A stretch of 64,000 nucleotides of DNA from Scyliorhinus canicula (GCF_902713615.1 NC_052158.1:32095990-32159989); one strand, 5' to 3'; shown: positions 18,819-64,000, counted from the stretch's first letter. A program made the numbers and translations. The notes: generated by a model from the letters alone, not told the origin.

Positions 18819-18945
18819 AATGTGTTTGATGCAAGCGTAGAAGATTGGACGCAATACGCAGAATGTATACAATACTTTATCAGAACTAACGCTATAAGTA
18901 GTGATGAGCGCCAGACTGTGATACTGTTGGCTGCCTGTGGAGCAC

Positions 18946-23660: not shown

Positions 23661-23689
23661 TAATTAATAATTATTTATATCTACACATC

Positions 23690-40393: not shown

Positions 40394-40439
40394 ATGATTG
40401 GACTGATGGCGCTGCTCCTGTGTGGCGAGGTGGCTGCAG
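40394..40439 (+). CDS. MHC class I heavy chain exon 1 (signal peptide)
   Basis: MIGLMALLLCGEVAA plus phase-1 G, donor GTGAGT at 40440; downstream of SXY; joins in frame to give mature D-S-H-S-L-R-Y. Confidence 0.8.
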
Positions 40440-41297: not shown

Positions 41298-41929
41298 GGT
41301 GCTGCTTTAACGAGTAACAAATGATTGGTATATGCTAATTTATTGTAACCAAATCTCAATGCATATCGGTATGTTCCATTCTGGAATCTGGGCATTCTGG
41401 TGTCCCAATCCAGAGGGCGTGCAGTCTCTGGAACTCTCTTCCTGAAAAGGCAGTGGAAGTAGAGACTTTGAATATTGTGAAGTCAGAGCTAGTTGGATTC
41501 TTGATTTACAATAGGGTGAAAGGTTATCGGGGTCGGCGGGAATGTGGGGTTGTAGTTACAATCAGATCAGACCAGCTTGAACTTAATGAATGGTGGACAG
41601 ACTCGAGGGCCCATGACCTAACTTGTATGTCCATATGGCCCCTGTGTTAGAACCTGCTGTGTTCTATTGGCTGGGACAGTTGGATCCCCCATGATACTTG
41701 GGGAATATGAGCTCTGCCAATTAGAGGGGGGTGGGGCATTCAATCGCAGTGCAGCTGTAAAATTGACTTGGCCAGTGTGGTACAGGCTAGAGAGGTAACC
41801 ATTAGTGAAATATTGACCCTGTGCACATATGCTTGTAAATAAAAGTTACTTTCTGTTTTAGTCAAAAAACTCGTGGTGCATTTTTCGTGGCCCTCACGTA
41901 AGCCTGTCAGAACTTGCAATAAGGACCTT

Positions 41930-42677
41930 GGGTGGGATTCTCCGTTGCCCGACGCGGAAATTACGAACGGCGACAGGCGGAGAATGGCTCCTGATGCCGA
42001 AATCGTGGCAGGTGCCGGTTTGATGCTAGGTCACAGTGATCCGCCCCGTCCAAATCGGCGTCATTGAGATGCACGCCGCACGCAGTCGCGACCCCGGTGG
42101 AATGTCATTAGCGGGCTGACCCATGATGCTCTGCCTCCGATGGACCGAGTTCCCAACACTGTTACAAGCATAGGTACACAGTGTCAAAATTTCACGAATG
42201 GTTCCTTCTCTAGCCTGTACCATGTGTGGTCTCAGGGGGCGTGAGCCTGGAATGGCAGCTGCGGAGAGAGAGAGGGCGTGCGGACAGTGCCCAGGACCGT
42301 CACACTCGACCGAGATCCGTGCTGCTGGTCAGGGGGCTTCTGCCAGGGCTGGGGGAAGTGGTGGGAGGTGGCCGGGAGGTGGGCTGTGGGGTCGGGGTGG
42401 GCAGATATGTTGTCCAGCACAGCAAGTGCCACCTTTTCCAGGGTGATTGGTGCGTGTGTGGGGGTTGTAGGCGTACACATGGCTGCAGCTTATCAGCCCT
42501 GCGCATGTGCAACATGGACCTGCCGATTCTCCAACCCTTTTCCGCACGTTCCGCATGTGTCTAACATGGCACCGGATCTAGCCCTTCACCAGTAGCTGAA
42601 TCGGCGAGGGTTTCGCGCTGATTTTCCCATCGTGAAACACCACGGATCCTCCGTTGCGCGGCACTTAGCCTCAGGAC
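41930..42677. mobile_element. PIF/Harbinger-type MITE, right end truncated
   Basis: Left TIR GGGTGGGATTCTCC; internal similarity to the 7357 and 30966 elements; subterminal gcacttagcctcagga. Confidence 0.65.
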
Positions 42678-42758
42678 TCCAAAAGTCTTTGTCTGGTTTC
42701 TCATGACTGGAAGGACGAAGTACACTAAAGTTGATTAGCTGTACTTTTCTCCACAGGA

Positions 42759-43629
42759 GATTCCTTTCAAAATCTTCCAGGTCACAGAATCACTGAATTG
42801 TTACAGCGCAGAAGGAAGACATTCGGCCCATCCCGTCTACACTAGCTCTCCGAGTGAGCAATTTGCTTTGTACCATTCCCAGCCTTCTCCCCATGACCCT
42901 GCATATCCATCCTTTTCAGATAATAGTCTAATTCCCTTTTGAATGTTTCAGTCGAAACTGCCTCCACCATACTCTCAGGCAGTACATTCCAGAGCTTAAC
43001 CACTCACTGTTTTGTTGTGTGTTTGGTGTCTAGGCGGGCTATTTGGGGATTGTCTATTCTCCCAAGAGCTGCTCAATACTAATTTCTCAAAATGATTGCT
43101 GAGAACTTACAGCTATGATTTACACATTTGGAACTTAGCAGAGAGCTGGAACCTCTCCTTCCAGAGCTTCCACATTCAGTCACGTGACCTCACATCATTA
43201 TTAAACCAGCGTCATGTCGGCTTCTGACATGAACATATTACATTCACGACATGTAAAAGATTTTCCTTGCCACTTTTTTGCTTCTTTTACCAAGTAATTT
43301 AAATCTGTGCCCTCTGGATCTCCATCCTTTCACAAGTGGGGACAGTTTCTCCCGATCTACTGTGTCTGGACCTTTCACAATTTTGAATGCCTCTATTAAA
43401 TCATCTCTTGGCCTTCTCTTCTGCAAGGAAAACACAACAAACCTCTCAAATCTATCTTCATAACTGACGTTCGTCATCTGGGAACTGTTTTACACTGCCG
43501 TCACATCCTTCCTAAAATATAGTGCCCAGAACTGTACCTAATATTCCTTCTGAGGCTGAACTAGTGTCATATAAAAGTTCAACCTAACCTCCTTGCTTGT
43601 TCCCCTATTTTAGAGCTTATGATATTGCA
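42759..43629. repeat. Duplicated composite block, copy 2 (in class I intron 1)
   Basis: Colinear with 8359-9432, lacking the SINE present in copy 1. Confidence 0.85.
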
Positions 43630-43965
43630 CGCTTAATTAAGCGTTTCCTCAACCTATCCTGCGACCTTCAAAGAATCATAAAACAATTCTGTACATGATT
43701 TTTTTTACCTTCCCTCTGACCATGATGTGGCAGTTTAAACCCATGACCTGACCCTCTGGTTGGGGAGTTGGGAGGAGGTCGTATTGGAGGATAGACATAT
43801 TTTGCAGTAACTCTACAATAGTTACTTAGTGTTAGTAGTTTATTATTTTATTTATCCTAATTATCTATTACGCAGTTGTTTCATAATAAATTATTTAAAC
43901 TAGATGTACTGTCATGCATCATTCATATCGGCCAGTCTACAGAACATGACATGTTACCAGGGTTA

Positions 43966-46900
43966 ATAAGAACATAAGAACTAGGAGCAGGAGTAAGCCA
44001 TCTGGCCCCTCGAGCCTGCTCCGCCATTCAATTAGATCATGGCTGATCTTTTGTGGACTCAGCTCCACTTTCCGGCCCGAACACTATAACCCTTAATCCC
44101 TTTATTCTTCAAAAAAATAATCTATCTTTACCTTAAAAACATGTAATGAAGGAGCCTCAACTGCTTCACTGGGCAAGGAATTCCATACATTCACAACCCT
44201 TTGGGTGAAGAAGTTCCTCCTAAACTCAGTCCTAAATCTACTTCCCCTTATTTTGAGGCTATGCCCCCTAGTTCTGCTGTCACCCGCCAGTGGAAACAAC
44301 CTGCCCGCATCTATCCTATCTATTCCCTTCATAATTTTAAATGTTTCTATAAGATCCCCCCTCATCCTTCTAAATTCCAACGAGTACAGTCCCAGTCTAC
44401 TCAACCTCTCCTCATAATCCAACCCCTTCAGCTCTGGGATTAATCTAGTGAATCTCCTCTGCACACCCTCCAACGCCAGTACGTCCTTTCTCAAGTAAGG
44501 AGACCAAAACTGAACACAATACTCCAGGTGTGGCCGCACTAACACCTTATACAATTGCAACATAACCTCCCTAGTCTTAAACTCCATCCCTCTAGCAATG
44601 AAGGACAAAATTCCATTTGCCTTCTTAATCACCTGTTGCACTTGTAAACCAACCTTCTGTGACTCATGCACTAGCACACCCAAGTCTCTCTGAACAGCGG
44701 CATGCTTTAATATTTTATCGTTTAAATAATAATCCCATTTGCTGTTATTCATACCAAAATGGATAACCTCACATTTGTCAACATTGTATTCCATCTGCCA
44801 GACCCGAGCCCATTCACTTAACCTATCCAAATCCCTCTGCAGACTTCCAGTATCCTCTGCACTTTTTGCTTTACCACTCATCTTAGTGTCATCTGCAAAC
44901 TTGGACACATTGCCCTTGGTCCCCAACTCCAAATCATCAATGTAAATTGTGAACAATTGTGGGCCCAACACGGATCCCTGAGGGACACCACTAGCTACTG
45001 GTTGCCAACCAGAGAAACACCCATTTATCCCAACTCTTTGCTTTCTATTAATTAACCAATCCTCTATCCATGCTACGACTTTACCCTTAATGCCATGCAT
45101 CTTTATCTTATGCAGCAACCTTTTGTGTGGCACCTTGTCAAAGGCTTTCTGGAAATCCAGATATACCACACCCATCGGCTCCCCGTTATCTACTGCACTG
45201 GTAATGTCCTCAAAAAATTCCACTAAATTAGTTAGGCATGACCCGCCTTTTACGAACCCATGCTGCGTCTGCCCAATGGGACAATTTCTATCCAGATGCC
45301 TCGCAATTTCTTCCTTGATGATAGATTCCAGCATCTTCCCTATTACCGAAGTTAAACTCACTGGCCTATAATTTCCTGCTTTCTGCCTACCTCCTTTTTT
45401 AAACAGTGGCGTCACGTTTGCTAATTTCCAATCCACCGGGACCACCCCAGAGTCTAGTGAATTTCGGTAAATTATCACTAGTGCATCTGCAATTTCCCTA
45501 GCCATCTCTTTTAGCACTCTGGGATGCATTCCATCAGGGCCAGGAGACTTGTCTACCTTTAGCCCCATTAGCTTGCCCATCACTCCCTCCTTAGTGATAA
45601 CAATCCTCTCAAGGTCCTCACCTGTCATAGCCTCATTTCTATCAGTCGCTGGCATGTTATTTGTGTCTTCCACTGTGAAGACCGACCCAAAAAACCTGTT
45701 CAGTTCCTCAGCCATTTCCTCATTTCCCATTATTAAAACTCCCTTCTCATCCTCTAAAGGACCAATATTTACCTTAGCCACTCTTTTTTGTCTTATATAT
45801 TTGTAAAAACTTTTACTGTCTGTTTTTATATTCTGAGCAAGTTTGCTCTCATACTCTATCTTACTCTTCTTTATAGCTTTTTTAGTAGCTTTCTGGCCCC
45901 CTAAAGATTTCCCAGTCCTCTAATCTCCCAGCAATCTTTGCCACTTTATATGCTTTTTCCTTCAATTTGATACTCTCCCTTATTTCCTTAGATATCCACG
46001 GTCGATTTTCCCTCTTTCTTCCGTCCTTCCTTTTTGTTGGTATAAACCTTTGCTGAGCACTGTGAAAAATCGCTTGGAAGGTTCTCCACTGTTCCTCAAC
46101 TGTTCCACCATAAAGTCTTAGCTCCCAGTCTACCTTAGCTAGTTCGTCTCTCATCCCATTGTAATCTCCTTTGTTTAAACACAAAACACTAGTATTTGAT
46201 TTTACTTTCTCACCCTCCATCTGTATTTTAAATTCCACCATATTGTGATCGCTCCTTCCGAGAGGATCCCTAACTATGAGATCATGAATCAATCCTGTCT
46301 CATTACACAGGACAAGATCTAGGACCGCTTGTTCCCTCGTAGGTTCCATTACATACTGTTCTAGGAAACTATCGCTGATACATTCTATAAACCCCTCCTC
46401 ACGGCTTGCCTTGACCGACCTGGTTAAACCAATCGACATGTAGATTAAAATCCCCCATGATAACTGCTGTACCATTTCTACATGCATCAGTTATTTCTTT
46501 GTTTATTGCCTGCCCCACCATCTCGTTACTATTTGGTGGCCGATAGACTACTCCTATCAGTGACTTTTTCGCCTTACTATTCCTGATTTCCACCCAAATG
46601 GATTCAACCTTATCCTCCATAGCACCGATGTCATCCCTTACTATTGCCCGGATGTCATCCTTAAATAACAGAGCAACACCACCTCCCTTACCATCCACTC
46701 TGTCCTTCCGAATAGTTTGATACCCTCGGATATTTAACTCCCAGTCGTGACCATCCTTTAACCATGTTTCAGTAATGGCCACTAAATCATAGTCATTTAC
46801 GATGATTTGTGCCACCAACTCATTTACTTTATTCCGAATACTACGAGCATTTAAGTAAAGTACACTTATGTTGGTTTTTTTACCTCTGTTTTGAACCTTA

Positions 46901-48010
46901 ACATCTCCAGTTTTATTCCTTTTGTTATTACTGGGCCTATTCACTGTGCTCTCCTCAGTCACTATACCTTGTACTGTCGCCCTTATGGATTTCTGACTAT
47001 GTCTTCTCTGCCTTGCACTTTTCCCCTTACTTCCTTTTGTTTCTGTCCCTGTTTTACTACCTTCCAACTTCCAGCATTGGTTCCCATCCCCCTGCCACAT
47101 TAGTTTAAACCCTCCCCAACAGCTCTAGAAAACACCCCCCCTAGGACATCGGTTCCAGTCCTGCCCAAGTGCAGACCGTCCGGTTTGTACTGGTCCCACC
47201 TCCCCCAGAACCGGTCCCAATACCCCAGGAATTTGAATCCCTCCCTCTTGCACCATCTCTCGAGCCACGCATTCATCCTATCTATCCTGACATTCCTACT
47301 CTGACTAGCTCGTGGCACTGGTAGCAATCCTGAAATTACTACCTTTGAGGTCCTACTTTTTAGTTTAACTCCTCTCCCTAAATTCCGCTTGTAGGACCTC
47401 ATCCCGTTTTTTACCTATATCGTTGGTGCCTATGTGCACCACGACAGCTGGCTGTTCACCCTCCCCCCCCAGAATGTCCTGCAGCCGCTCCAAGACATCC
47501 TTGACCCTTGCACCAGGGAGGCAACATACCATCCTGGAGTCTCGATTGCGTCCACAGAACCGCCTGTCTATTCCCCTTACGATCGAGTCCCCTATCACTA
47601 TAGCCCTGCCATTTTTCTTCCTGCCCTGCTGTGCAGCAGAGCCAGCCACGGTGCCATGAACCTGGCTGCTGCTGCCTTCCCCTGGTGAGCCATCTCCCTC
47701 AACAGTATCCAAAGCGGTATATCTGTTTTGCAGGGAGATGACCGCAGGGGACACCTGCACTGCCTTCCTACTCTTGCTCTTTCTTTTGGTCACCCATTTT
47801 CTATCTCCCTCAGTAACCTTCACCTGCGGTGTGACCAACTCGCTAAACGTGCTATCCACGACCTCCTCAGCATCGCGGATGCTCCAAAGTGAGTCCATCC
47901 GCAGCTCCAGAGCCGTCAAGCGGTCTAACAAGAGCTGCAACTGAACACACTTCTTGCACGTGAAGGAGCCAGGGACAGTGGACGTGTCCCTGAGCTCCCA
48001 CATCGCACAC
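43966..48010 (-). mobile_element. Young, 5'-truncated CR1 LINE, antisense in intron 1
   Basis: ORF1 esterase (47100-48003: GDSIVRG, HIGTND, DGLHL); APE (46399-47100); uninterrupted 559-aa RT/C-terminal ORF 44102-45781 with FADDTK; tail ataagaacataagaa; same family as 1270-5649. Confidence 0.95.
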
Positions 48011-48129
48011 GTAATGATTTACTAAGAACTCGAAAATTTGACACAAAACAATCCAAACCACGAAAGTTAACTTTGAAGGAAAAGAAAGAAAGCACATTTT
48101 TGCTACTAACCTTGCAATCTACTGGCCAC

Positions 48130-50100
48130 TGGTGCTCAACACGCGGTAAAACTTTGAAGTCTGGGATGGAAGGAATCAAGGCACCACACGGCATCAGATT
48201 ACTGGTAATGTAGACGAGAATTGGAGGGTATTTATGCAACAGTTTAAACTCTATGATGCAGCCCTTGGTCTGCAGGCACAGCCCGATGAGAGGTGTATCG
48301 CGGTGCTGCTCATTCTAGCAGGTCCTCAAGCAATTGAAATTTTCAACACTTTTTTTGTCTTTGAAAACGGAATTGACAGCAAAAGCTTTGACGGAGTACT
48401 TAAACAATTTGATCGGCATTGCTCCCCTAAAAAAATGGAAGCTTTGAACGCTGTGTATTCTGGGCATGCACCCAGAGTGTGGGATAGATTCCTGACTGAC
48501 CTGCGATTGAAGATGCAGTCGTGCAACTTCCTCTAGTCGTCAATGATATGAGATCAGATAGTTTTCGTAATCTCCAATGATAAAGTGCGTGAACGATTTC
48601 TGCAGGAAACAGAGCTAAAACTCGAAAGTGCGAGCCAAATATGTCACGCTACTGAGCTTGCAGCAAAGCACACTGAATCTCCGGCATTTTGTCGCGAAAG
48701 CAGAAGAGGCGGCAGACACCATTGTGTTCCCAGTGCGGGCAGCCATTTTGAGCGGCCGACCCAATCCTCCATTTTGTGTTCATGATGTGGCAAACGGCAT
48801 TTGCCACGGCAAGGCCCTGCTTATGAAAAAACATGTGCCAACTGTAATGGCAATTAATTTGTAACCCAATGATATTCCATGAGCGGGCCTGAACAAATAA
48901 AGAGCATCAGCGCTATTGATGAAGTGTGCCTAGAGGACACATTCTTTGTAGACATGGGGCAGGATGCTCCGACCCCCCCACAGGGTCGGGGAATCGCTTG
49001 GGGCCGGCGTAAATCCTGCCCCCGCCGTGGCCGAAATTCTCCGCCACCTGGGAATCGGCGGGGGAGGGAATCGCGCTCGCCGGTCGGCGGGCCCCCCCCG
49101 CGGCGATTCCCCGGCCCACGACCGGCCGAAGTCCCGCCGCTGTGAGGCCTCTCCCGCCGACGTGGTTTAAACCACCTCTGGTGTTGGAGGGAGCAGGCGG
49201 CGCGAGAGGGCCCCGGGTTCCGTGGGGGGAGCAATCTGACTCCGGGGGGTCCCCCCACGGTGGCCTGGCCCGCGATCGGGGCCCACCGATCGGCAGGCGG
49301 GCCTGTGCCGTGGGGGCACTCTTTTTCTTCCCGTGACTTAGCGGGTGCTGACCCTCCAGCGCATGTGCAGATTCACGTTGACCGGCGAAGGCCTTTCGGC
49401 CAGCAGTTCGCGTCGGTCGGCGGGGCGCCAAAGACTGTTCGCGTCGGTCGGCGGAGCGGGAGGCACTCCGGCGCGGGCCTAGCCCCTAATGGTGTGGAAA
49501 ATTCCACACATTTGGGGAGGCCCGACGCGGAGTGGTTCTCGCCATTCCGGTACGCCGGGACCCCCGTCCCACCGGGCAGGGGAGAATGCCGGTCGTGATC
49601 TCCAGTGGATCAGGAGACTCAAGTTGTAGCAAATAGTATTTGTACAAATCTGCAGAAATAATGAATTGAAGGCAGATAACCAAAAGGATAAATGGACTGT
49701 GCCATTAAAGATAAATTGCACAGTGATAACAGTCAATCTGACACTGATGTGAGGACCAACCTCAAATATTTTGTCCGATGTATACAAGCTGAGAATTGAA
49801 CCAAAAATAGTTCACAGAACGGTACTGTTGAGAGATTACAATGGTCTTTAGAAGCATGTGAGCTTGAGGTTGAAGTAAAAAAATAAAATTGACAAGTTGA
49901 ATTTTCCGTGGTGGTGGCGGACTGCAAATCTTTGATTGGAGTAGAGGTGTGTGAGGAATGTCAAGTCGGGGTACCACCACTGAATTCCACCACCGGCAAA
50001 TGCCCGCAAAACCACCCAATGTCCAGGTTGTCACACCTCAGGAAAAGGCAGGATTTCACAATGTTCACACCTCATCCGACCAAGTCTCAGTGTGCCACCC
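48130..50100 (+). mobile_element. Degenerate Gypsy remnant (gag, PR) in intron 1
   Basis: QQFKLYDAALGL...LLILAGPQAIEIFNTF...FLTDLRLKMQSCNF; CgNcgN-like zinc knuckle near 48790-48860; protease-like region ~49700-49950. Confidence 0.65.
48957..49594. mobile_element. PIF/Harbinger-type MITE inserted in the Gypsy remnant
   Basis: GGGCAGGATGCTCC ... GGAGAATGCCGGTC; flanks atg/gtg; similar to 18202-18818 and 38482-39192. Confidence 0.7.
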
Positions 50101-50150
50101 TTCAGCATGTCACTCTGGCAAGTGTCTCTCCGCAGTTGGTTTCACCACAG

Positions 50151-50950
50151 GGTGTCGCTCCTCTGGGTGTCACTCCTCTGGGTGTCGCTCCTCTGGGTGT
50201 CGCTCCTCCGGCTGTCACTCCTCCGGCTGTCACTCCTCTGGGTGTCACTCCTCCGGGTGTCGCCCCTCAAGCTGTTGCTCCTCCGGGAGTCCCTCCTCCG
50301 GCTGTCGCCCCTCCGGCTGTCGCCCCTCCGGCTGTCGCCCCTCCGGCTGTCGCTCCTCCGGCTGTCGCTCCTCCGGCTGTCACACCTCAGGGTGTCACTC
50401 CTCTGGGTCTCACTCCTCAGGGTGTCACTCCTCCGGCTGTCGCTCCTCCGGCTGTCACACCTCAGGGTGTCACTCCTCTGGGTGTCACTCCTCAGGGTGT
50501 CACTCCTCCGGCTGTCGCTCCTCCGGGTGTCGCTCCTCTGTCTGTCACTCCTCTGGGTGTCACTCCTCCGGGAGTCGCCCCTCAGGCTGTTGCTCCTCCG
50601 GGTGTCCCTCCTCCGGCGGTCGCCCCTCCGGCTGTCGCTCCTCCGGCTGTCGCTCCTCCGGCTGTCACTCCTCCGGGTGTCACACCTCAGGGTGTCACTC
50701 CTCTGGGTGTCACTCCTCTGGGTGTCACTCCTCAGGGTGTCGCTCCTCTGGGTGTCGCTACTCTGGGTGTCGCTCCTGTGGGTGCCGCTCCTCTGGGTGT
50801 CGCTCCTCCGGGTGTCGCTCCTCCGGGTGTCACTCCTCCGGCTGTCGCTCCTCCGGGTGTCGCTCCTCCGGGTGTCACTCCTCCGGCTGTCGCTCCTCCG
50901 GGTGTCACTCCTCCGGCTGTCGCTCCTCCGGGTGTCGCTCCTCCGGGTGT
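50151..50950 (+). repeat. 15-bp minisatellite, ~53 units (G[G/C]TGTC[A/G]CTCCTC[C/T/A]G)
   Basis: Exact 15-bp phase throughout; stop-free in three forward frames; 315-bp higher-order repeat (50256 and 50571). Confidence 0.95.
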
Positions 50951-51646
50951 CATGCTTCGGGGCATTGCCCAGCAGGTTCCTTCAAAATATGGAAACGGGC
51001 TGATGGTCAATTCTGTTCAGAGTGAAATTGGAGGGTTGATGGGAGAATGGATTTGGAGCTTGGAATCGACCTAAGGGGAAAAATCGTTCAGGGCTTTTAT
51101 TGCTTTATAATAGTTTTCATGTTGTCAAGAGCACACATTAGACTCTGACCATGATGCTATCTCGTCACTTGTATCATATGTGACACTCCCTGTCACCCTT
51201 TGCACCTATTTATATGTTGCCCCTCCCGACTCTTTATCTTTCTGAAACTGTCTTTGAGAAAAGTTCAGGAAGTTGTTGATTAAACCTGAACCATACAGGC
51301 TGGGTAATGTACCGAGGATCTCTCATTGTGCCTGCCAGCCTGTGAATTATTCAAACTAAAGTCACTGGTGTTTTCAAGACCAACGCATGCTCAGATAGCT
51401 GAGTATCAGTGGCTGAACAATCTTTCAGAGATTGAATTGCTCTGTTATAGTCCCAATATCTGAACCCATCAGGTCCCAGTGTCCACGTTGGGTGTGTATT
51501 TCCATGTCCGGAGGGGTAGAGTGGTTTCCGTGTTCATGGGATAGTGTCCACCGTGTGCTGGAGACTGGGAAGCCCTTTTAAAATGCCGTCTGATGTCTGG
51601 TGATCTATCATTGAGAAGGGGGAGGAACACGTCTGCAGCACCTTTA

Positions 51647-51852
51647 GGGGCAGCACGATGGCGCAGTGGTTAGTACCCTGCCTCACGATGCCCAGGATCC
51701 GGGATCGAAACCGGCCCCGGGTCACTGTCTGAGTGGAGGTTGCATATTCTCCCCATGTCTGCGTGGGTCTTACCCCCACAACACAAAGATGTGCAGGGTA
51801 GGTGGATAGCCCATGCTAAATTGCCCCTTAATTGGAATTTTTTTTTTAAAGA
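51647..51852 (+). mobile_element. SINE, short-tail form
   Basis: ggggcagcacgatggcgcagtggttag head; aaattgccccttaattgg tail. Confidence 0.75.
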
Positions 51853-52131
51853 TGGGAATTTAAAATTATATCTTTTAGCATGATGTGGGCATCCTTTGCA
51901 AGGCCAGCATCTTTAATGCATTGTTAATTGTCTTTGAGAAGGTGGTGGTGAGTTGCTTCTTGAACCGCTGCCGTCCATGTGATGTAGGGACAATCACAGT
52001 GCTGTTGGAGAGGTGTTAAACATGGAAGAGTATTGATCCATTAACTGAGGTCATCATTGGTTGCTGGTAATAATCAGCAGGAGATTCAATATCTTCTGTT
52101 TGACCTGATGCAGTGAGAATGCATGGAGCCC

Positions 52132-52479
52132 AGATAGATGCGGGCAGGTTATTTCCACTGGCGGGTGAAAGCGGAACTAGGGGGCATAGCCTCAAAATAA
52201 GGGGAAGTAGATTTAGGACTGATCTAAGGAGGAACTTCTTCACCCAAAGGGTTTTGAATCAATGGAATTCCCTGCCAGTGAAAGAGTTGAGGCTCCTACA
52301 TTAAATGTTTTCAAGATAAAGACAGATAGCTTTTTGAAGAATAAAGGGATTAAGGGTTATGGTGTTCGGGCAGGAAAGTGGGGCTTAGTCCACAAAAGAT
52401 CAGCCATGATCTCACTGAATGGTGGAGCAGGCTCGAGGGGCCAGATGGCCGACTCCTGCTCCTAGTTCTTATGTTCTTA
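52132..52479 (+). mobile_element. CR1 3' end fragment abutting the alpha1 acceptor
   Basis: Near-identical to the 3' 350 bp of the CR1 at ~5300-5649, including the ttcttatgttctta tail. Confidence 0.9.
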
Positions 52480-52494
52480 CTGTCTGTGTTTCAG

Positions 52495-52755
52495 ACTCTC
52501 ACTCCCTCCGGTATTTCCTCACTGGTGTATCTCCGATCGATGGTTTCCCAGAGTTTGTGGCTGCTGGTTATGTAGATGACGTCCAGTTTGTCATGTACGA
52601 GAGTGATCGTAAAGAATTGATCCCCCGAGAAAACTGGATGGTGGAGAGAGAGGGGGCCACATTTTGGGAGCGAAAGAAATTCCTTGTGCAGGAGCAAGAG
52701 TTGTATTTCAAAACCTATATTCCAAACCTCATGAAACGGATCAACCAGTCGGAAG
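52495..52755 (+). CDS. MHC class I exon 2 (alpha1 domain)
   Basis: tttcag acceptor; DSHSLRYFLTG...FVAAGYVDDVQFV...WMVEREG..FWE...RINQSEG; NQS sequon; gtgagt donor; 261 bp, phase 1/1. Confidence 0.95.
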
Positions 52756-52961
52756 GTGAGTCCTAACCTTCCCATAACTTGGTACTTTTCTGTCTGTTCA
52801 ATGGTGCCTGGTGGGGTTGGGGAGGAGCAGGAGTGGGATGTGATCTGGGACCCAGAGGCTTGTGGTTTGTGTGCGCGTGTATGTATGTGTGTACGTTTGT
52901 GCGTGTGTAGGGTCAATATTGGAACTAACACTGATTGACAGCTTGTGTTTGTCATTCCCAG

Positions 52962-53234
52962 GGGAGCACGTTTACCAGATGATGAATGGCTGTGAGCTGA
53001 GGGATGATGGAACAACGAGTGGATTCAACCAATACGGGTGGGATGGACGAGATTTCATCAGCTTCGACAAGAGTAACATGGTGTGGGTGACCCCGGTCCC
53101 CTGGGGAGAGAGCATCAAACGCAGCTGGGACAAGAACACAGTCGACAAACAGAGATGGAAACATTACCTGGAGGTGGAATGTATCGACTGGCTGAGGAAA
53201 TACCTGGAGTATGGACAGAGGGAACTGAGAGTCG
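52962..53234 (+). CDS. MHC class I exon 3 (alpha2 domain)
   Basis: ttcccag acceptor; GEHVYQMMNGCEL...QYGWDGRDFISFD...YLEVECIDWLRKYLEYG; two conserved Cys; 273 bp, phase 1/1. Confidence 0.95.
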
Positions 53235-56200
53235 GTGAGTGAGGGAGGGACTGAGAGTCGGTGAGTGAGGAGGGGAACTGAGAGTCGGTGACTGAGGGGG
53301 AACAGAGTCGGTGAGTGAGGGGGGGGACTGAGAGTCGGTGAGTGAGGGGGGACTGAGAGTCCGTGAGTGAGGGGGGGGGGACTGAGAGTCGGTGAGTGAG
53401 GGGGGGACTGAGAGTCGGTGAGTGAGGGGGGGGACTGAGAGTCGGTGAGTGGGGGGGGGGGGGCTGAGAGTCGGTGACTGAGGGGGAACAGAGTCGGTGA
53501 GTGAGGGGGGCCTGAGAGTCGGTGAGTGAGGGGGGGACTAATTCGGTGAGTGAGGGGAGGGGACTGAGGGTCAGTGAGTGAGGGGCAGACAGAGTCGGTG
53601 AGTGAGGGGGGACTGAGAGTCGGTAAGTGAGGGGGGGAGTGAGAGTCGGTGAGTGAGGGGGGTCTGAGAGTCGGTGAGTGAGGGGGAACAGAGTCGGTGA
53701 GTGAGGGGGGGACTGTGTCGGTGAGTGAGTGGGGGACTGAGAGTCAGTGAGTGAGGGGGGACTGATAGTCGGTGAGAGAGGGGGGGCACTGAAAGTCGGT
53801 GAGTGAGGGGGAACAGAGTCGGTGAGTGAGGGGGGGACTGAGAGTCGGTGAGTGAGGGGGGACTGAGAGTCGGTGAGTGAGGGGGGGACAGAGTCGGTGA
53901 GTGAGGGGGGACTAAGTCAGTGAGTGAGGGAGGGACTGAGTCGGTGAGTGAGGGGGGACTGAGATTCGGTGAGTGAGGGGGGGTCTGAGAATCGGTGAGT
54001 GAGGGGGAACAGAGTCGGTGAGTGGGGGGGGAGTGAGAGTCAGTGAGTGAGGGGGGACTGAGAGTCGGTGAGTGGGGGGGAGTGAGAGTCGGTGAGTGAG
54101 GGGGAACAGAGTCGGTGAGTGAGGGGGGGACTGAGTCTGAGTGAGGGAGGGACTGAGAGTCGGTGAGTGAGGGGGGACAGAGTCGGTGAGTGAGGGGGGG
54201 ACTGAGAGTCGGTGAGTGAGGGGGGGACTGAGAGTCGGTGAGTGAGGGGGGGGACTGTGAGTCGGTGAGTGAGGGAGGGACTGAGAGTCGGTGAGTGAGG
54301 GGGGGACTGAGAGTCGGTGAGTGAGGGGGGGGAATGAGAGTCGGTGAGTGAGGGGGGGACTGAGAGTCGGTGAGTGAGGGGGGGACAGAGAGTCGGTGAG
54401 TGAGGGGGGGACTGAGAGTCGGTGAGTGAGGGGGGACAGAGTCGGTGAGTGAGGGGGGGACTAAGTCAGTGAGTGAGGGAGGGACTGAGTCGGTGAGTGA
54501 GTGGGGACTGAGAGTCGGTGAGTGAGGGGGGGTCTGAGAGTCGGTGAGTGAGGGGGGGACTGAAAGTCGGTGAGTGGGGGGGGGGAGTGAGAGTCAGTGA
54601 GTGAGGGAGGACTGAGAGTCGGTGAGTGAGGGGGGGACTGAGAGTCGCTGTGAGGGGGGACTGAGAGTCGGTGAGTGAGGGGGGGACTGAGAGTCGGTGT
54701 GAGGGGGGGACTGAGAGTCGGTGAGTGAGGGGGGGACTGTGAGTCGGTGAGTGAGGGAGGGACTGAGAGTCGGTGAGTGAGGGGGGGGAATGAGAGTCGG
54801 TGAGTGAGGGGGGGACTGAGAGTCGGTGAGTGAGGGGGGACTGAGAGTCGGTGAGTGAGGCGAGGGTCTGAGAGTCGGTGAGTGAAGGGGGGACTGAGAG
54901 TCGGTGAGTGAGGGGGGGAACTGAGAGTCGGTGTGAGGGGGGGACTGAGAGTCGGTGAGTGAGGGGGGGACTGTGAGTCGGTGAGAGAGGGAGGGACTGA
55001 GAGTCGGTGAGTGAGGGGGGGAATGAGAGTCGGTGAGTGAGGGGCGGACTGAGAGTCGGTGAGTGAGGGGGGACTGAGAGTCGGTGAGTGAGGCGAGGGA
55101 CTGAGAGTCGGTGAGTGAGGGGGGGACTGAGAGTTGGTGAGTGAGGGGGGGACTGAGTCGCTGTGAGGGGGGACTGAGAGTCGGTGAGTGAGGGGGGGAC
55201 TGTGAGTCGGTGAGTGAGGGAGGGACTGAGAGTCGGTGAGTGAGGGGGGGGAATGAGAGTCGGTGAGTGAGGGGGGAACTGAGAGTCGGTGCGTGAGGGG
55301 GGGACTGAGAGTCGGTGAGTGAGGGGGGGGACTGAGAGTCGGTGATTGAGGCGAGGGACTGAGAGTCGGTGAGTGAGGGGGGGACTGAGAGTCGGTGAGT
55401 GAGGGAGGGACTGAGAGTCGGTGAGTGAGGGGGGGACTGAGAGTCGGTGAGTGAGGGGGGGACTGAGAGTTGGTGAGTGAGGGGGGGACTGAGAGTCGGT
55501 GTGAGGGGGGGACTGAGAGTCGGTGAGTGAGGGGGGGACTGTGAGTCGGTGAGTGAGGGAGGGACTGAGAGTCGGTGAGTGAGGGGGGGGAATGAGAGTC
55601 GGTGAGTGAGGGGGGAACTGAGAGTCGGTGAGTGAGGGGGGGACTGAGAGTCGGTGAGTGAGGGGGGGGACTGAGAGTCGGTGATTGAGGCGAGGGACTG
55701 AGAGTCGGTGAGTGAGGGGGGACTGAGAGTCGGTGAGTGAGGGAGGGACTGAGAGTCGGTGAGTGAGGGGGGGACTGAGAGCCGGTGAGTGAGGGAGCGA
55801 CTGAGAGTCGGTGAGTGAGGGGGGTACTGAGAGTCGGTGAGTGAGGGGGGGGAAAGAGAGTCGGTGAGTGAGAGGGGGACTGAGAGTCGGTGAGTGAGGG
55901 GGGGTCTGAGTCGGTGAGTGAGGGGGGGGCTAAGTCAGTGAGTGAGGGAGGGACTGAGTCGGTGAGTGAGGGGGGACTGAGAGTCGGTGAGTGAGGGGGG
56001 GGTCTGAGAGTCGGTGAGTGAGGGGGAACAGAGTCGGTGAGTGGGGGGGGGGAGTGAGAGTCAGTGAGTGAGGGGGGACTGAGAGTCGGTGAGTGGGGGG
56101 GGAGTGAGAGTCGGTGAGTGAGGGGGAACAGAGTCGGTGAGTGAGGGGGGGACTGAGTCTGAGTGAGGGGGGGGACTGAGAGTCGGTGTGTGAGAGGGGA

Positions 56201-58552
56201 CTGAGAGTCGGTGAGTGAGGGGGGGTCTGAGTCGGTGAGTGAGGGGGGGACTAAGTCAGTGAGTGAGGGAGGGACTGAGTCGGTGAGTGAGGGGGACTGA
56301 GAGTCGGTGAGTGAGGGGGGGACTGAGAGTCGGTGAGTGGGGGGGGGGAGTGAGAGTCAGTGAGTGAGGGGGGACTGAGAGTCGGTGAGTGAGGGGGGAC
56401 TGAGAGTCGCTGTGAGGGGGGGGACTGAGAGTCGGTGAGTGAGGGGGGGACTGAGAGTCGGTGTGAGGGGGGGACTGAGAGTCGGTGAGTGAGGGGGGGG
56501 ACTGTGAGTCGGTGAGAGAGGGAGGGACTGAGAGTCGGTGAGTGAGGGCGGGGAATGAGAGTCGGTGAGTGAGGGGCGGACTGAGAGTCGGTGAGTGAGG
56601 GCGGACTGAGAGTCGGTGAGTGAGGCGAGGGACTGAGAGTCGGTGAGTGAGGGGGGGACTGAGAGTCGGTGAGTGAGGGAGGGACTGAGAGTCGGTGAGT
56701 GAGGGGGGGACTGAGAGTCGGTGAGTGGGGGGGGAGTGAGAGTCAGTGAGTGAGGGGGGGACAGAGAGTCGGTGAGTGAGGGGGGGACTGAGAGTCGGTG
56801 AGTGAGGGGGGGGACTGAGAGTCGGTGAGTGAGGGGGGGACTGAGAGTCGGTGAGTGACGCGAGGGACTGAGATTCGGTGAGTGAGGGGGGGACTGAGGG
56901 TCGGTGAGTGAGGGAGGGACTGAGATCGGTGAGTGAGGGGGGGACTGAGAGTCGGTGACTGGGGGGGTGAGTTGAGAGTCAGTGAGTAAGGGGGGGGGAC
57001 TGAGAGTCGGTGAGTGAGGGGGGGGACTGAGAGTCGGTGAGTGAGGGGGGGGCTGAGAGTCGGTGAGTGAGGGGACAGAGTCGGTGAGTGAGGGGGGGGA
57101 CTGAGAGTCGGTGAGTGAGGGGGGGACTGAGAGTCCGTGAGTGAGGGGGGGACTGAGAGTCGGTTGAGTGGGGGGGGGAGTGAGAGTCAGTGANNNNNNN
57201 NNNNNNNNNNNNNNNNNNNNNNNNNNNNNNNNNNNNNNNNNNNNNNNNNNNNNNNNNNNNNNNNNNNNNNNNNNNNNNNNNNNNNNNNNNNNNAGTCGGT
57301 GAGTGGGGGGGAGTGAGAGGCAGGAGTAAGGGGGGGACTGAGAGTCGGTGAGTGAGGGGGGGACTGAGAGTCGCTGTGAGGGGGGGGACTGAGAGTCGGT
57401 GAGTGAGGGGGGGACTGAGAGTCGGTGTGAGGGGGGGACTGAGAGTCGGTGAGTGAGGGGGGGACTGTGAGTCGGTGAGTGAGGGGGAGTGACTGAGAGT
57501 CGGGTGAGTGAGGGGGGGTAATGAGAGTCGGTGAGTGAGGGGGGACTGAGAGTCGGTGAGTGAGGGGGGGAATGAGAGTCGGTGAGTGAGGGGGGGGACT
57601 GAGAGTTCGGTGATTGTGGCGAGGGACTGGGAGTCGGTGAGTGAGCGGGGGACTGAGAGTCGGTGAGTGAGGGAGGGACTGAGAGTCGGTGAGTGAGGGG
57701 GGACTGAGAGTCGGTGAGTGAGGGAGGGACTGAGAGTCGGTGAGTGAGGGGGGTACTGAGAGTCGGTGAGTGAGAGGGGGACTGAGAGTCGGTGAGTGAG
57801 GGGGGGTCTGAGTCGGTGAGTGAGGGGGGACTGAGAGTCAGTGAGTGAGGGGGGGACTGAGAGTCGGTGAGTGAGGAGTGGACTGAGTCGGTGAGTGAGG
57901 GAGGGACTGAGAGTCGGTGAGTGAGGGGGGGACTGAGTCAGTGAGTGATGGAGGGTCTCTGTCTGTGAGTGAGGAGGGTCTGAGAGTCGGTGAGTGGGGG
58001 GGGACTGAGAGTCGGTGAGTGAGGGGGGGGACTGAGAGTCGGTGAGTGAGGGGGTACTGAGAGTCGGTGAGTGAGGGGGGGACTGAGAGTCGGTCAGTGA
58101 GAGGGGGGACTGTGAGTCGGTGAGTGAGTGGGGGACTGAGAGTCGGTGAGTGAGGGGGGGACTGAGAGTCGGTGAGTGAGGGGGGACTGAGAGTCGGTGA
58201 GTGAGGGGACTTAGAGTCGGTGAGTGAGGGGGGACTGAGTCGGTGAGTGAGGGGGGGGACTGAGAGTCGGTGAGTGAGTGGGGACAGAGTTGGTGAGTGA
58301 GGGGGGGGTCTGAGAGTCGGTGAGTGAGGGGGGGGACTGAGAGTCGGTGAGTGAGGGGGGGACTGAGAGTCGGTGATCGAGGGGAGGACTGAGAGTCGGT
58401 GAGTGAGGGGGGGACTGAGAGTCGGTGAGTGAGGGAGGGACTGAGAGTCGGTGAGTGAGGGGTGGGACTGAGTCAGTGAGTGTTGGAGGGTCTCAGTCTG
58501 TGAGTGAGGAGGGTCTGAGTCGGTTAGTGAGGGAGGACTGAGAGTCGGTGAA
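53222..58552 (+). repeat. G-rich minisatellite, ~24-28 bp unit (gactgagagtcggtgagtgagggggg), roughly 200 copies, filling intron 3
   Basis: Continuous array from the last 13 nt of exon 3 to ~65 nt before the alpha3 acceptor; contains a 100-N gap, so length is a placeholder. Confidence 0.95.
57194..57293. other. Assembly gap (100 N) inside the minisatellite
   Basis: Run of n characters. Confidence 0.99.
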
Positions 58553-58618
58553 GGGGGTGATGTCTGTGGTTCTCTATCTCGATTTTCCTGTCCTGATTCC
58601 TCTTTCTTTCTCTCTCAG

Positions 58619-58882
58619 TTGCCCCCATCGTGTCCTTTACCCGTCTGGGTGATTCTAACCGGCTTTCCTGTGTCGTCACCGGATTTTACCCTCAAGCCAT
58701 CGAGGTGAATCTGTGCAGAGACGGAGTGGTAATTGATGAGACCCTGTCCAGTGGAATCTTACCCAATCACGACAGGACCTACCAGATCCGGAAATGGGTG
58801 GCGTTTGATCCGGAGGACAAGGCTGAGTATTCCTGTCAGGTGGAACACAGCGGACTGAATGAGACACTGGTGGTGATTTATG
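58619..58882 (+). CDS. MHC class I exon 4 (alpha3, Ig C1-set domain)
   Basis: Long pyrimidine tract plus ag; VAPIVSF...LSCVVTGFYPQAIEV...PNHDRTYQ...YSCQVEHSGL; gtaaga donor; 264 bp, phase 1/1. Confidence 0.95.
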
Positions 58883-59245
58883 GTAAGACCATTTCTCACT
58901 GTTAGAAGGACACAGCCTCAGATTAGGGTCACAGGAGGGAGGGTCAGTGTTGAGCTGGCAACCCAGGATGGGCTGAAGCCCACAGAACAGAGAACAAAAA
59001 AATCATAAATTTCAATGTGTCAGAGTCTTCACCCCACTTACTGAGTGAGCCTATCCTGGGATGTTACAGTAATACATGGCTCAGTAAATCATATGGTCAT
59101 CTGAATTAGAGCAGCAGTTGGCAATTTCTCCCCTCGATCCTGCTCCACCCTTCACTAAGATCATGGATGACATGATTGCGACCTCAACTCCACATAACCA
59201 CCTCCCCTTTCCAACCATTGAGTCCATTTTTTATCAAGTCTATTT

Positions 59246-62200
59246 TGTCATAATATACACATCAGTATATAATGGTGCAGACACACACTGACTGACACAC
59301 TGCAAGACCAATCAACATACACAACACCGCAGCCAATCACCAGTTAGAGCACGCTCACTATAAAGCCAGAGGGCACTAGTTTTCCCGCTCATTCGGGATG
59401 CAGCCTCTGAGACGGACAGAGCTCGCAGCTCGTAGCACAAACCTTCATCATGTGCTAACAGATTAGACTGGTCAGGATAGGCATAGGTCTTCAGTTAATC
59501 TAACATATTGTCGACCCACACTGCAAGTATGTTCAACAGTTCTTCGTTTAATTAAATAGTGTTGTACTTTTACAAGTGCTGGTAGCCTGTCTATGTTACT
59601 GCTAAGATAAACGCAGTCTCCACAGATCCAGAGTACCCAACACATCATGGTACCAGTACGTGATGTTAAAATTTATTAGACCTACCTTCAAGTGATCTGC
59701 CTCTGACCTGCAATAAGGACAGCGTCCACCCCCCACCGCCGCTCCGCATCACCGGCAACCTTCAAACAGCGGTTCCAGCTTTACCTTGAAGCCACAGACT
59801 TGGAAGCTGCTTCAGACGCCAGGAAGATTGCTCTCTTCCTCTCCACGGCTGGGGACCACTCCATTCATATCTTCAACTCTCTCACTTTTGCTGAAGGTGA
59901 AGACAAGTCCAAATTGAAGACGGTTCTCCTCAAATTTGACAGTTACTGTGACATCGAGATAAGTGAAAGTTTCGAGCGCTTTGTCTTCCAACAGCGTTTG
60001 CAGGGTAAGGATGAACCTTTCCAATCTTTTCTCACCCGCCTTCGTATCCTTGCCCAGTCCTGTAATTACGGATCCACATCCGACTCCATGATACGCGACC
60101 AGATCATTTTCGGTGTACAGTCGGACCTCCTAGGCCAGCAGCTCCTCAAGGTTAAACAGCTCATCCTTACGATTGCCATCGAGATCTGCGTTCTGCATGA
60201 ACACGCCACTAGCCGATACTCGCACATTCAAGCGGCTGAAACGGCGCGGCAAGGTCCCTACGAGGCAGAACGGGTGCAAGCAATCAAGCAACTCCAGAGC
60301 CTCAGCCTGGATCAGGGCGGCCATTTTGTGCGCTTTTCACGGCCTCCAGCGCATGCGCGCACTGAATGAGAGGACGGCGGCGCCAAAGATCGCACTGTGC
60401 AGGAGCGCACAACGTACGACCGCACCGCACATGCGTGGTGGCTCGCCAAGCGTTCTGACATCACGACCTGCGCCAACTGTGACTCCACCCACTTAAAGAG
60501 GCAATGTCCTGCAAAATCCCGATGCTGCCTATAATGTGGCAAGCTTGGCCACTATGCTGCCTTATGCAGGTCTGCTCAACCTACTACCTCTCGTCGCTCT
60601 AACCAGCTACACAGGAATGTCCGCGCCATCCAGCCCACGGTCACCGAGTCCGATTCTGACCTGATGCTGGACCTTGACACCGAGGACCCGAAAGCACCAT
60701 TCCGGGTGGGCATCATTACCAAACACAAGATGCCCCCGAAGACAAAAGTCAAACCTCTCCCAATATTCAGCATTGATCCGGACGACGAGTGGCGTGCCAC
60801 CGTCACGGTCAACCGATCCCGAATCCGATTCCGCCTGGACACCGGCGCTTCAGCCAATCTCATTGCGTGATCTGACCTCGAAAGCCTCCATGTCAAGCCT
60901 ACCATCCTGCCATCAGCCTGCCAGCTATTGGACTATAATGGTAATGCCATTGCTGCCAGTGGCTCATGCCAACTTGGAAGCGGTGCACCGGTCACTAAAG
61001 GCTAACCTGCCCCTTGAAATAGTGGGATCCTCCAAAGCCTCCCTACTTGGTGCGCAAGCATGCAAACTCCTGAACCTTGTCCAAAGGGTTCACTCCCTAT
61101 CACTTGCTGATGCATCTGCATCTCAGGACACTGACTTTAGGATTCAGCTGGATGCCATCATCAACCGATACCACAGTGTATTCGAGGGCATGGGCACACT
61201 CCCATACACTTATAAGATCTTGTTGAAACCAAATGCTACGCCTGTGGTGCACGCACCTCACAGGGTCCCAGCACCCCTCAAGGACCGCCTCAAGCAGCAG
61301 CTACAGGACCTCCAGGACCAGGGAGTAATTTCAAAAGTAACGGAACCGACTGACTGGGTCAGCTCCATGGTATGTGTGAAAAAACCTTCCAGCGAATTGC
61401 GAATATGTATTGATCCCAAGGACCTCAACCGCAATATTATGAGAGAGCACTATCCCATTCCAAAACGCGAAGAACTCACCTGTGAGCTGGCACGCGCCAA
61501 ATTCTTCACCAAGCTAGACGCATCAAAGGGGTTCTGGGAGATCCAACTCGACACATCCAGTCGGAAGCTCTGCACCTTTAACACCCCATTTGGGCGGTAT
61601 TGCTACAACTGGATGCCGGGATGCCGTTTGGTATCATCTCTGCATCGGACGTGTTCCACAGGATTATGGAACAGATGATGGAAGGTATTGAAGGGGTTCA
61701 CGTCTATGTGGACGACATAATCGTCTGGTCTACCACCCCGCAGGAGCACATTGATCGCCTTCAACGTGTCTTCCGACGGATCCATGGCCTCCGCCTCAAC
61801 AGGTCCAAATGCTCCTTTGGTCAAACAGAAATTAAGTTCCTCGGAGACTACATCTCACAGTTGGGCGTGCAGCCGGATGCGGACAAGGAATCTGCCATTA
61901 AGGCCATGAAGACACCAGAGGACAAGGAAGCGGTCCTCCGCTTCCTGGGCATGGTCAACGTTCTAGGGAAATTCATCCCTAACCTCGCCTCTCACACCAC
62001 GGCTCTCAGGGACCTGGTCAAGAAGACGACAGAGTTCCAATGGTTCCCTGCCCACAAACACGAATCGTGGGAACTCAGGGCGAAGCTGACCGTGTTGGCA
62101 TTTTTTGATCCGGCCAAAGAAACAAAGATTTCCACGGATGCCAGTCAATCCGGCATTGGAGCAGTGCTCCTTCAACGTGATGATGCCTCATCATGGCTCC

Positions 62201-64000
62201 TGTTGCATACGCGTCACGTGCAATGACGCCTATCGAACAATGCTATGTGCAAATTGAAAAAGAGTACCTGGGCCTTCTTACCGGCGTCGTTAAATTCCAT
62301 GACTATGTCTATGGACTCCCAAAGTTCACAGTCGAAGCAGACCACAGACTGTTGGTCAATATCATTCAAAAAGACCTTAACGACATGACCTCTCGCCTGC
62401 GGTGTATTCTCCTTAAGCTCGGGCGTTACAACTTCGAGCTCGTCTACACCCCGGGCAACAAGTTCATTGACACTGACGCCCTCTCCTGGTCAGTCACCAT
62501 ACCCTGCAACCCAGCGGGATTCATTTGTCAGGTTGATGCTCATGTGGCATTCGCTGCTTCCAATCTGCCTGCCACGGATGAACGACTCATCCAGATTCGT
62601 TGTGAGATGGCCGATGACCCCCTGCTCCAACGTGTCATGCGCCACCTAACGGACGGGTGGTTCAAGGGCCAATGCCCTCAATTCTATAATGTTAAGGGTG
62701 ACCTGACGGTAGTAGACGGGATTCTTCTCAAGCTGGACCGTATTGTCATCCCGCATAGCATGCACAACCTTGTCCTCTAGCAGCTCCATGAGGGCTACCT
62801 GGGAGTGGAGGTGTCGCCAACAGGCCCGTGAAGCAGTGTACTGGCTTGGAATCAACGAGGACATAGCTAATGACATGCTCAACTGCCCAACATGTCAGCG
62901 ATTCCAGCCGGCCCAACCAAGGGAAACCTTGCAACCTCATGAGTTGGTCACGTCTCCCTGGACCAAGGTGGGCATCGACCTGTTCCATGCTCTTGGCCGG
63001 GACTACATCCTCATTGTGGACTATTTCCCAAACTACCCGGAGGTGGTAAGGTTGCACGACCTCGCCTCAGCTGCGGTCATTCGTGTGTGTAAGAAAAACT
63101 CCGCTCGACACGGCATCCCACTCACGGTCATGTCAAACAATGGCCCCCGTTTTGCCAGTCAGGAGTGATCCAAGTTTGCCAGACGGTACAACATCACACA
63201 TGTCACGTCCAGTCCCCCTTATCCCCAATCCAATGGTAAAGCAGAGAAGGGAGTGCACATCATAAAACGGCTCCTGTGCAAGGCGGCCAATGCTGGTTCT
63301 GATTTTTACCTTGCCTTGCTTGCCTACTGCTCCGCCCCCTTGTCCACCAGCCTGTCACCGGCTCAACTACTCATGAATCGCACGCTGCGGACAACGATGC
63401 CGTCCATTCGTGTCCCGGACCTGGCCCACGTTCCGGTCCTTTGCCGGATGCAGCTGACTCGGGCCCAACACAAATCGGCCTACGACTCCTGTGCCACGGA
63501 TCTCCCTGCTCTGGCTCCCAATGACAACGTCCCTGTCCAGCTTCCAGATGGTCGCTTGTCCTCCACTGCTGTCGTGCTCAGACAAGTGGCCCCTTGTTCA
63601 TTCTTGGTTCGTCTACCGGACGGCTCTCTTCTGCGCCGAAATAGGCGGGCACTGCGACTCCTTCCGCGCTTGCCACATGATCTTCAGGTCCTGCCTCGCC
63701 ATCACGACGACCCCATCATGGACTTTGCAGATCTCCCTGTCGCTCTGCCACCCTCTAAGTCTGACACAGTCCAGCCCATTCCAGAACCGGCGGCTCTTGA
63801 CCCACCCTTGAGGCGGTCAACCAGAATTCGTCGCCCACCTCAGAGACTAAATTTATGAACTGTCTGAATTCATGGACTCTGAATTGTTTTGTTGCTCTCT
63901 TTAATCAACTCACTGGTTTGCACATAATGTTGTTCTATCTACTATTTTGTTGCATACTGTTCACCTGCACACAACACCTTCCAATGTAAATAGATTAGTG
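59246..64000 (+). mobile_element. Near-full-length degenerate Gypsy/Ty3 retrotransposon in intron 4 (5' LTR 59246-59647, PBS, gag-pol to 63858; 3' LTR beyond window)
   Basis: TG...CA LTR followed by TGGTACCAG; gag (LSTAG..IFNSL, MIRDQIIFG); zinc knuckles; PR FRLDTGASAN; RT KLDASKGFW, YVDDII; RH STDASQSGIG; IN PWTKVGIDLF, IVDYF, SNGKAEKGV; many stops and frameshifts. Confidence 0.92.

Follow-up and report, generated by a model that had tools for sequence, protein, structure and literature searches.

In the catshark Scyliorhinus canicula, a class I gene of the major histocompatibility complex (MHC) lies on the plus strand of a stretch of 64,000 nucleotides (GCF_902713615.1 NC_052158.1:32095990-32159989; hereafter the window, with positions counted from its first letter). 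Except for 67 of its 5,384 nt, intron 3 of this gene is an array of tandem repeats, in which the end of the alpha2 exon and its 5' splice site recur about 200 times. The array is an exon-junction minisatellite, and we consider it probable that it is old, renews itself and is tolerated as a product of molecular drive, rather than being selected for a function in splicing. At the modest depth of the RNA data, the authentic, most upstream donor is the donor used in mRNA. New here are a second array at the start of intron 1, the presence of both arrays in class I genes of the sevengill shark that belong to another clade, and a mosaic of identities in a pair of these sevengill genes. The arrays may be markers of recombination boundaries on either side of the peptide-binding exons.

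Tandem Repeats Finder describes the intron 3 repeats as a single array of period 26 with 208.7 copies (an assembly gap of 100 N being counted), 85% matches and the consensus GGGGACTGAGAGTCGGTGAGTGAGGG (Table 1). An initial annotation of the window had described ~200 tandem copies of the alpha2 exon end plus donor that fill nearly all of a ~5.4-kb intron, and both the copy number and the extent hold, the ~200 copies being a minimum or an estimate owing to the gap inside the array. The repeats begin at 53220, that is 15 nt inside the alpha2 exon, whose last 11-15 nt form the first part of unit 1. The exon tail ACTGAGAGTCG together with GTGAGTGAGGG makes up one unit, and the first unit spans the exon-intron boundary. 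Between 53200 and 58620, the motif GTGAGT occurs 189 times. Sites identical to the real donor number 152 when positions -3 to +6 are compared, 142 at -3 to +8, 134 at -6 to +8, 85 at -11 to +8 and still 77 at -11 to +11; the units do reproduce the exon end and the full donor, as had been noted from the first inspection. The G-run behind GTGAGTGA most often comprises 7 nt (range 1-10). Overall, the array consists of 55.6% G and 8% C (GC skew +0.75) and contains 108 G-runs of at least 7 nt, with 69 pairs of such runs lying 15-25 nt apart. Neither AATAAA nor ATTAAA is present in it.

The alpha2 exon ends in phase 1 (AGA GTC G/GTGAGTGAGGG). Read-through past the real donor yields GTC GGT GAG TGA with a stop codon at 53240-53242, confirming the reading given earlier for a downstream donor. 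The gap (57194-57293) is flanked on both sides by the same unit family on the same strand and with the same commonest unit variants, and as it falls within the intron the reading frame is unaffected. Unit variants are diverse and evenly spread along the array. No other copies of the 26-nt unit were found in the window on either strand, and on this ground a dispersed repeat was discarded as the unit's source, as far as the window goes. The non-repeat remainder of the intron (58552-58618) aligns with the end of intron 3 in a bamboo shark gene, where this intron is short and lacks the array.

To determine donor usage, RNA reads were placed on positions 52400-53480, which comprise alpha1, intron 2, alpha2 and nine array units. 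Raw reads came from the one run with coverage (X21), and contigs were available from two other studies (X15 and X1). In X21, intron 2 had a depth of 0 and its splice joint was seen. Depth was 28.4 at 53177-53213, 15.8 at 53214-53250, 0.24 in the next bin and 0 beyond, and the value of 15.8 is the one expected from the 21 exonic positions of its bin alone. In one X15 contig and two X1 contigs, position 53234 is followed by TTGCCCCCATCGTGTCC..., precisely the beginning of alpha3 (TTGCCCCCATCGTG...). Likewise, the NCBI protein P0192 reads ...GQRELRV/VAPIVSF, which corresponds to a joint between the first donor and alpha3. No junction from a downstream intron 3 donor was present among the sampled RNA: every junction seen connects the first donor to alpha3, and the depth bounds the use of other donors to roughly <10%. 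The drop in RNA depth, the contigs and the P0192 joint thus agree with the earlier suggestion of a spliceosome that selects the foremost among many identical donors. Loose ends of RNA reads before 52492 carry the last 29 nt of the leader exon, indicating that intron 1 is likewise spliced from its first donor. Two side observations concern the X1 contigs: one of them links the leader exon straight to alpha2 (at 52959) with alpha1 skipped, and a loose end at 53231 (CTG/TTGCCCCCC...) resembles a paralogue reading RELTV.

The second array and the age of both arrays

The second array opens intron 1. There, the real donor reads CAG/GTGAGTGA, while later units read TCA/GTGAGTGA (8 units), TCG/GTGAGTGA (2 units) or TCA/GTGAGTAA (1 unit), and read-through likewise gives GGT GAG TGA. 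This array is homologous to 65-nt arrays in two class I loci of the sevengill shark Heptranchias perlo, a member of the Squalomorphii (L002:4050-4817 and L004:3050-3551), and also to decayed units in bamboo shark and sawfish.

Both sevengill loci, which lie 330 kb apart on one contig (JAYJKY010001632), are free of gaps and carry both arrays at the same two junctions as the catshark gene. The start of intron 1 is occupied by the 65-nt array (11.8 copies in L002 and 7.7 in L004), the start of intron 3 by a 26-nt array (27.6 and 24 copies, respectively). The unit consensus sequences of catshark and sevengill shark are identical at 25/26 positions (96%) for the 26-nt unit and at 57/65 positions (88%) for the intron 1 unit. 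As yardsticks between the same species, exons reach 64-78%, the non-repeat intron ends 57-63% and two short upstream segments ~80%. Even individual unit variants are common to both, as ACTGAGAGTCG and AGTGAGAGTCG each occur in catshark and in sevengill shark. The sevengill exons end in ACTGATGGCCG and ACTGAGGGCCG (GATGGCCG, GAGGGCCG), whereas their units read GAGAGTCG, like the exon tail of the catshark. Since the sevengill units match the catshark-type exon tail and not their own, the arrays appear to be of common origin rather than regrown at each junction. Independent regrowth from the junction of each species was judged unlikely for this reason, and also because the 63/65-nt intron 1 unit, which is mostly neither exon nor donor, is common to both.

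In a phylogenetic tree, the catshark gene groups (100/99) with Heterodontus O19480, nurse shark O19479 and sequences from Mustelus and bamboo shark, separate from the classical UAA of Triakis and nurse shark (6LUP); the label of the non-classical lineage UBA is absent from the database names. The sevengill genes fall into another well-supported class I clade (100/100) together with Squalus Q8HWH7 and the S. canicula protein P0237. The squalomorph and galeomorph sharks separated ~250 million years ago (bioRxiv 10.1101/2024.09.09.611499), and cartilaginous fishes are known to evolve slowly (PMC8455134).

The initial annotation had proposed inspecting the same intron in other sharks. Besides the arrays of the two sevengill genes, the comparison showed at most decayed remnants in genes of bamboo shark and sawfish. 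In the bamboo shark locus L001 (Chiloscyllium punctatum BEZZ01001013), gene copy B shares exon tail and donor with the catshark gene (ACTGAGAATCG/GTGAGTGAG), and its intron measures 88 nt and is array-free; in copy A, a G-rich array in a decayed state lies behind a gap of 2.8 kb. A further bamboo shark locus (L003) and the sawfish locus (L005) retain two or three decayed intron 1 units with 59-71% identity to either expanded consensus, and intron 3 of L005 holds one remnant unit. The expanded arrays are closer to each other than the remnants are to anything. In addition, L001 contains gaps at 6250-9069 and 18850-24457, just 5' of both alpha3 exons and over alpha2/intron 3, a hint that short-read assemblies of shark MHC regions are broken by such arrays.

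If 75% identity is taken as the neutral expectation, the probability of at least 25/26 matches is 0.006 and that of at least 57/65 matches is 0.009; an expectation of 82% gives 0.04 and 0.15, respectively. These figures are suggestive of a constraint on the unit sequences beyond neutral drift, the expected identities being assumed values rather than ones drawn from an orthologous neutral yardstick.

The explanation that we favour for these data runs as follows. The ~11 nt that end the alpha2 exon would have been duplicated in tandem together with the donor GTGAGTGA and the G-run, probably by slippage or unequal exchange on a junction rich in TGAG and G-runs, and the array would have grown until it filled intron 3. 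The spliceosome would take only the most upstream, exon-attached donor, and by analogy with human F7 the ~150 perfect copies would behave as silent intron sequence. Both arrays would predate the squalomorph/galeomorph split in class I genes, with continual turnover presumably keeping them homogeneous in some genes and decay prevailing in others. Three points weigh against this explanation. First, the unit identities of 96% and 88% exceed those of exons, non-repeat intron ends, upstream segments and decayed remnants (59-71%); a neutral, recently renewed array should have drifted further, and this indicates constraint or biased turnover. Second, the low RNA depth (~28x, from one run of raw reads) leaves room for rare use of downstream donors. 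Third, the length of the array might affect expression, as it does in human ABCA7.

Recombination and other readings

Comparison of the two sevengill loci revealed a mosaic. L002 and L004 share 97.6% identity upstream, 100% in the 5' untranslated region and leader, about 98% in the intron 1 array, 100% at the end of intron 3, 100% in alpha3 (0 differences in 270 nt), 98.8% in intron 4 and 99.6% downstream. Identity is only 86% in alpha1 (nonsynonymous divergence dN 0.31, synonymous divergence dS 0.39) and 89.7% in alpha2 (dS 0.13), and intron 2 is not alignable. This old, divergent block is bracketed by the two donor arrays, and identity switches there. At the protein level, the catshark paralogues show a gradient from 72% in alpha1 through 83% in alpha2 to 95% in alpha3. 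When membership of the sevengill alpha1 exons in different class I clades was tested, the signal was only weak and mixed.

One reading of this pattern, which is compatible with the splicing explanation given above, is that the intron 1 and intron 3 arrays act as or mark hot spots of recombination or gene conversion that bracket the alpha1 and alpha2 exons. Such hot spots would allow the peptide-binding cassette to evolve apart from the backbone of leader, alpha3 and tail, and both to undergo shuffling among class I genes. The near-identity of L002 and L004 outside the arrays and the divergence of alpha1, intron 2 and alpha2 between them speak for it, as do the presence of both arrays in two well-supported class I clades and the gradient among the catshark paralogues. 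However, the mosaic comes from a single gene pair whose breakpoints are located only to the arrays and their neighbourhood, and peptide-binding lineages kept for long by balancing selection, combined with homogenised flanks, would look alike with the repeats having no role. Moreover, alpha1 and alpha2 differ in their divergence, which calls for another breakpoint, located in intron 2; the catshark gene has no array there. The sevengill introns are also full of other minisatellites, and L002 and L004 could be assembled haplotypes. On balance, we consider hot spots at the arrays rather unlikely. The stronger proposal, that the array pair has been kept for supplying shared homology and fragile tracts for exchange of the peptide-binding cassette against a homogenised backbone, likewise appears doubtful to us; if true, the pair would represent a built-in recombination frame for MHC diversification. 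As an observation in its own right, the class I introns of L002 and L004 consist almost wholly of minisatellites, with at least 10 arrays per gene, units of 20-65 nt and up to 197 copies.

Another reading, modelled on ABCA7, leaves the extra donors unused and sees in the array a modulator of gene output that depends on its length. Many sites for U1 and hnRNP H/F, or else R-loops or G-quadruplexes on a non-template strand rich in G, might lower or slow expression or alter inclusion of the next exon. The skewed composition with its G-runs and closely spaced run pairs would fit, as would the conservation of the units across ~250 million years, and in ABCA7 array length reduces expression and makes skipping of the following exon more frequent (PMC5954066). 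On the other hand, the catshark gene is expressed and correctly spliced with ~205 units, and array-free genes exist in the same clade. We regard a modulating role as improbable.

Still less probable, and indeed very unlikely in our judgement, are active downstream donors, be it as the source of an alpha1-alpha2-GE* product, of transcripts subject to nonsense-mediated decay or of a copy-number rheostat, or else stepwise recursive splicing through the array. The 152 donors identical at -3 to +6, each followed by an in-frame stop codon, invite this idea, and in human IFI6, CBS and ABCA7 a low level of splicing occurs from the next one or two donors (PMC1557585, PMC5954066). However, no reads enter the array, and all junctions seen lead from the first donor to alpha3. 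Accordingly, a copy-number rheostat by donor choice, as had initially been envisaged, finds no support in the depth of 0 within the array in X21, in the contigs or in the P0192 joint. The isoform comprising alpha1 and alpha2 only fares no better, given the lack of reads into the array and the bound on other donors. As to recursive splicing, AGGT is absent from the array, pyrimidine runs in it do not exceed 5 nt, and at most 10/20 pyrimidines precede any AG in it, as compared to 20/20 at the real acceptor. In the absence of AG/GT and of a pyrimidine tract, the array offers no 3' splice sites for such a process, and its role as a recursive-splicing substrate was rejected. Finally, an assembly artefact accounting for the array or most of its length might be suspected from the 100-N gap and from the fact that reads cannot be placed within the repeat, but it is highly improbable in view of the same unit in the same intron of two gap-free sevengill loci and of unit variants that are diverse and evenly spread, unlike those of a collapsed or duplicated block.

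Regarded purely as a case of splicing, the catshark gene repeats the situation of F7 and ABCA7 on a large scale and adds little, apart from providing a natural test of first-donor selection against ~150 perfect competitors. As identical G-run enhancers follow each donor copy, the choice of donor must depend on exon context or on position. A short life is what one expects of minisatellites. The two arrays, by contrast, keep their position, period and sequence across ~250 million years and between class I clades, and this persistence on either side of the peptide-binding exons is where the residual interest lies. In the one pair examined, they sit where identity switches from ~100% to 86-90%. 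If this pattern were general, it would bear on the shuffling of class I peptide-binding domains, which has long been a question for the immunogenetics of fish and sharks, and would help to explain breaks of shark MHC assemblies in these introns.

The host gene and its surroundings

The gene model is given in Table 1. A leader exon is followed by phase-1 exons encoding MHC_I (alpha1, alpha2) and C1-set (alpha3) domains, which is the layout of an MHC class I heavy chain; the remainder of the gene extends past the end of the window. Exons were searched individually. The alpha2 exon was compared with the full library, and one of its hits then served for a word search; this returned many shark class I proteins. 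P0192 ('major histocompatibility complex class I-related gene protein-like isoform X2 [Scyliorhinus canicula]') matches alpha1 (part), alpha2 and alpha3 with 100% identity. No further, paralogous class I exons were found elsewhere in the window.

Table 1. Features of the MHC class I gene and of its arrays in the window.
Feature	Position	Strand	Details
Leader (signal peptide) exon	40394-40439	+	ATG..GCTGCAG, phase 1; read from sequence
Intron 1	40440-52494	+	read from sequence
Intron 1 minisatellite	40440-41299	+	63 nt x 13.7; Tandem Repeats Finder; first unit starts at real donor
Alpha1 exon	52495-52755	+	Pfam MHC_I, E 1.7e-20; covered by RNA; joint 52755/52962 seen
Intron 2	52756-52961	+	206 nt, repeat-free; RNA depth 0, spliced joint
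Alpha2 exon	52962-53234	+	Pfam MHC_I, E 2.7e-23; P0192 100% identical
26-nt minisatellite	53220-58551	+	~201 sequenced units; 55.6% G; Tandem Repeats Finder
Intron 3	53235-58618	+	5,384 nt, gap included
Authentic 5' splice site GTGAGTGA	53235-53242	+	used donor; TGA at 53240-53242 in frame on read-through
Assembly gap, 100 N	57194-57293	.	inside array
Non-repeat 3' end of intron 3	58552-58618	+	67 nt, pyrimidine tract and AG
Alpha3 exon	58619-58882	+	Pfam C1-set, E 1.4e-15; P0192 100% identical

Read-through of any of the four visible introns, all of phase 1, meets an in-frame stop codon shortly behind the donor. Introns 1 and 3 (40439-40447 and 53234-53242) continue as GGT GAG TGA with an in-frame stop, intron 2 (52755-52766) reads GGT GAG TCC TAA, also with an in-frame stop, and in intron 4 (58882-58905) a stop follows after 7 codons. 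Reading frames of mobile-element type also occur in the window: a set of open reading frames for reverse transcriptase and endonuclease of the LINE (long interspersed nuclear element) type lies on the minus strand within intron 1 (44102-48003), and Ty3/gypsy-like pol frames (protease, reverse transcriptase, integrase) are found on the plus strand 3' of the alpha3 exon (59800-63858), presumably in intron 4. Intron 1 contains a further array at 50150-50951 with 53.5 copies of a 15-nt unit (GGGTGTCGCTCCTCC), which yields long spurious open reading frames in three frames (up to 388 amino acids, rich in Pro, Val and Gly). The segment 52400-52479 is a piece of a dispersed repeat that is very abundant in the RNA runs (word depth up to ~240,000 in X15). 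Many differing loose ends begin at 52474-52479, an indication that an interspersed element is expressed and ends just 5' of the alpha1 acceptor.

Human junction minisatellites as counterparts

The view that nothing of the kind had been described holds for MHC genes, as searches of the open-access literature for such arrays in MHC genes of sharks returned none. It does not hold for the kind of repeat, which is known from human F7, IFI6 (6-16), CBS, LMNB2, PDGF and ABCA7. In the minisatellites of the first five genes, the first unit spans the exon-intron boundary (PMC1557585). The closest parallel in splicing behaviour is the 37-bp minisatellite in IVS7 of F7, in which unit 1 spans the boundary and identical pseudo-donors, although functional, stay silent while a 5'->3' process selects the most upstream site (PMC1557585). 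F7 differs in carrying 5-9 units, as compared to ~200 in the shark, and a weak donor (UGG/gugggu versus TCG/GTGAGT), and scanning has been demonstrated by mutagenesis in F7 whereas in the shark it is inferred. In IFI6, CBS, LMNB2 and PDGF, the exon/intron junction is likewise reiterated in the intron (PMC1557585), with 10-26 units; the next two donors are used constitutively in IFI6 and CBS, while no such use was seen in the shark RNA.

In size, the shark array is matched by the variable number of tandem repeats in intron 18 of ABCA7, in which a 25-bp unit starting at the exon 18 donor is present in 12 to ~427 copies and extends over up to 10.7 kb (PMC5954066). Effects have been measured in this gene: retention of one unit (~2%) introduces a premature stop codon, and length is associated with lower expression and more skipping of exon 19 (PMC5954066). 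The ABCA7 repeat starts with the GT and has a sense strand rich in C, whereas the shark unit also copies 11 exonic nt and is G-rich. No report of deep evolutionary conservation was found for ABCA7, as compared to ~250 million years for the shark arrays. Both share a unit of ~25 bp at a donor, a strongly skewed base composition, hundreds of units that make up most of the intron, and a premature stop upon use of the next donor. Taken together, the first unit of the shark intron 3 array spans the boundary, the donor is repeated identically and the upstream donor is used; the array is of the same kind as the junction minisatellites of human F7, IFI6, CBS, LMNB2 and ABCA7.

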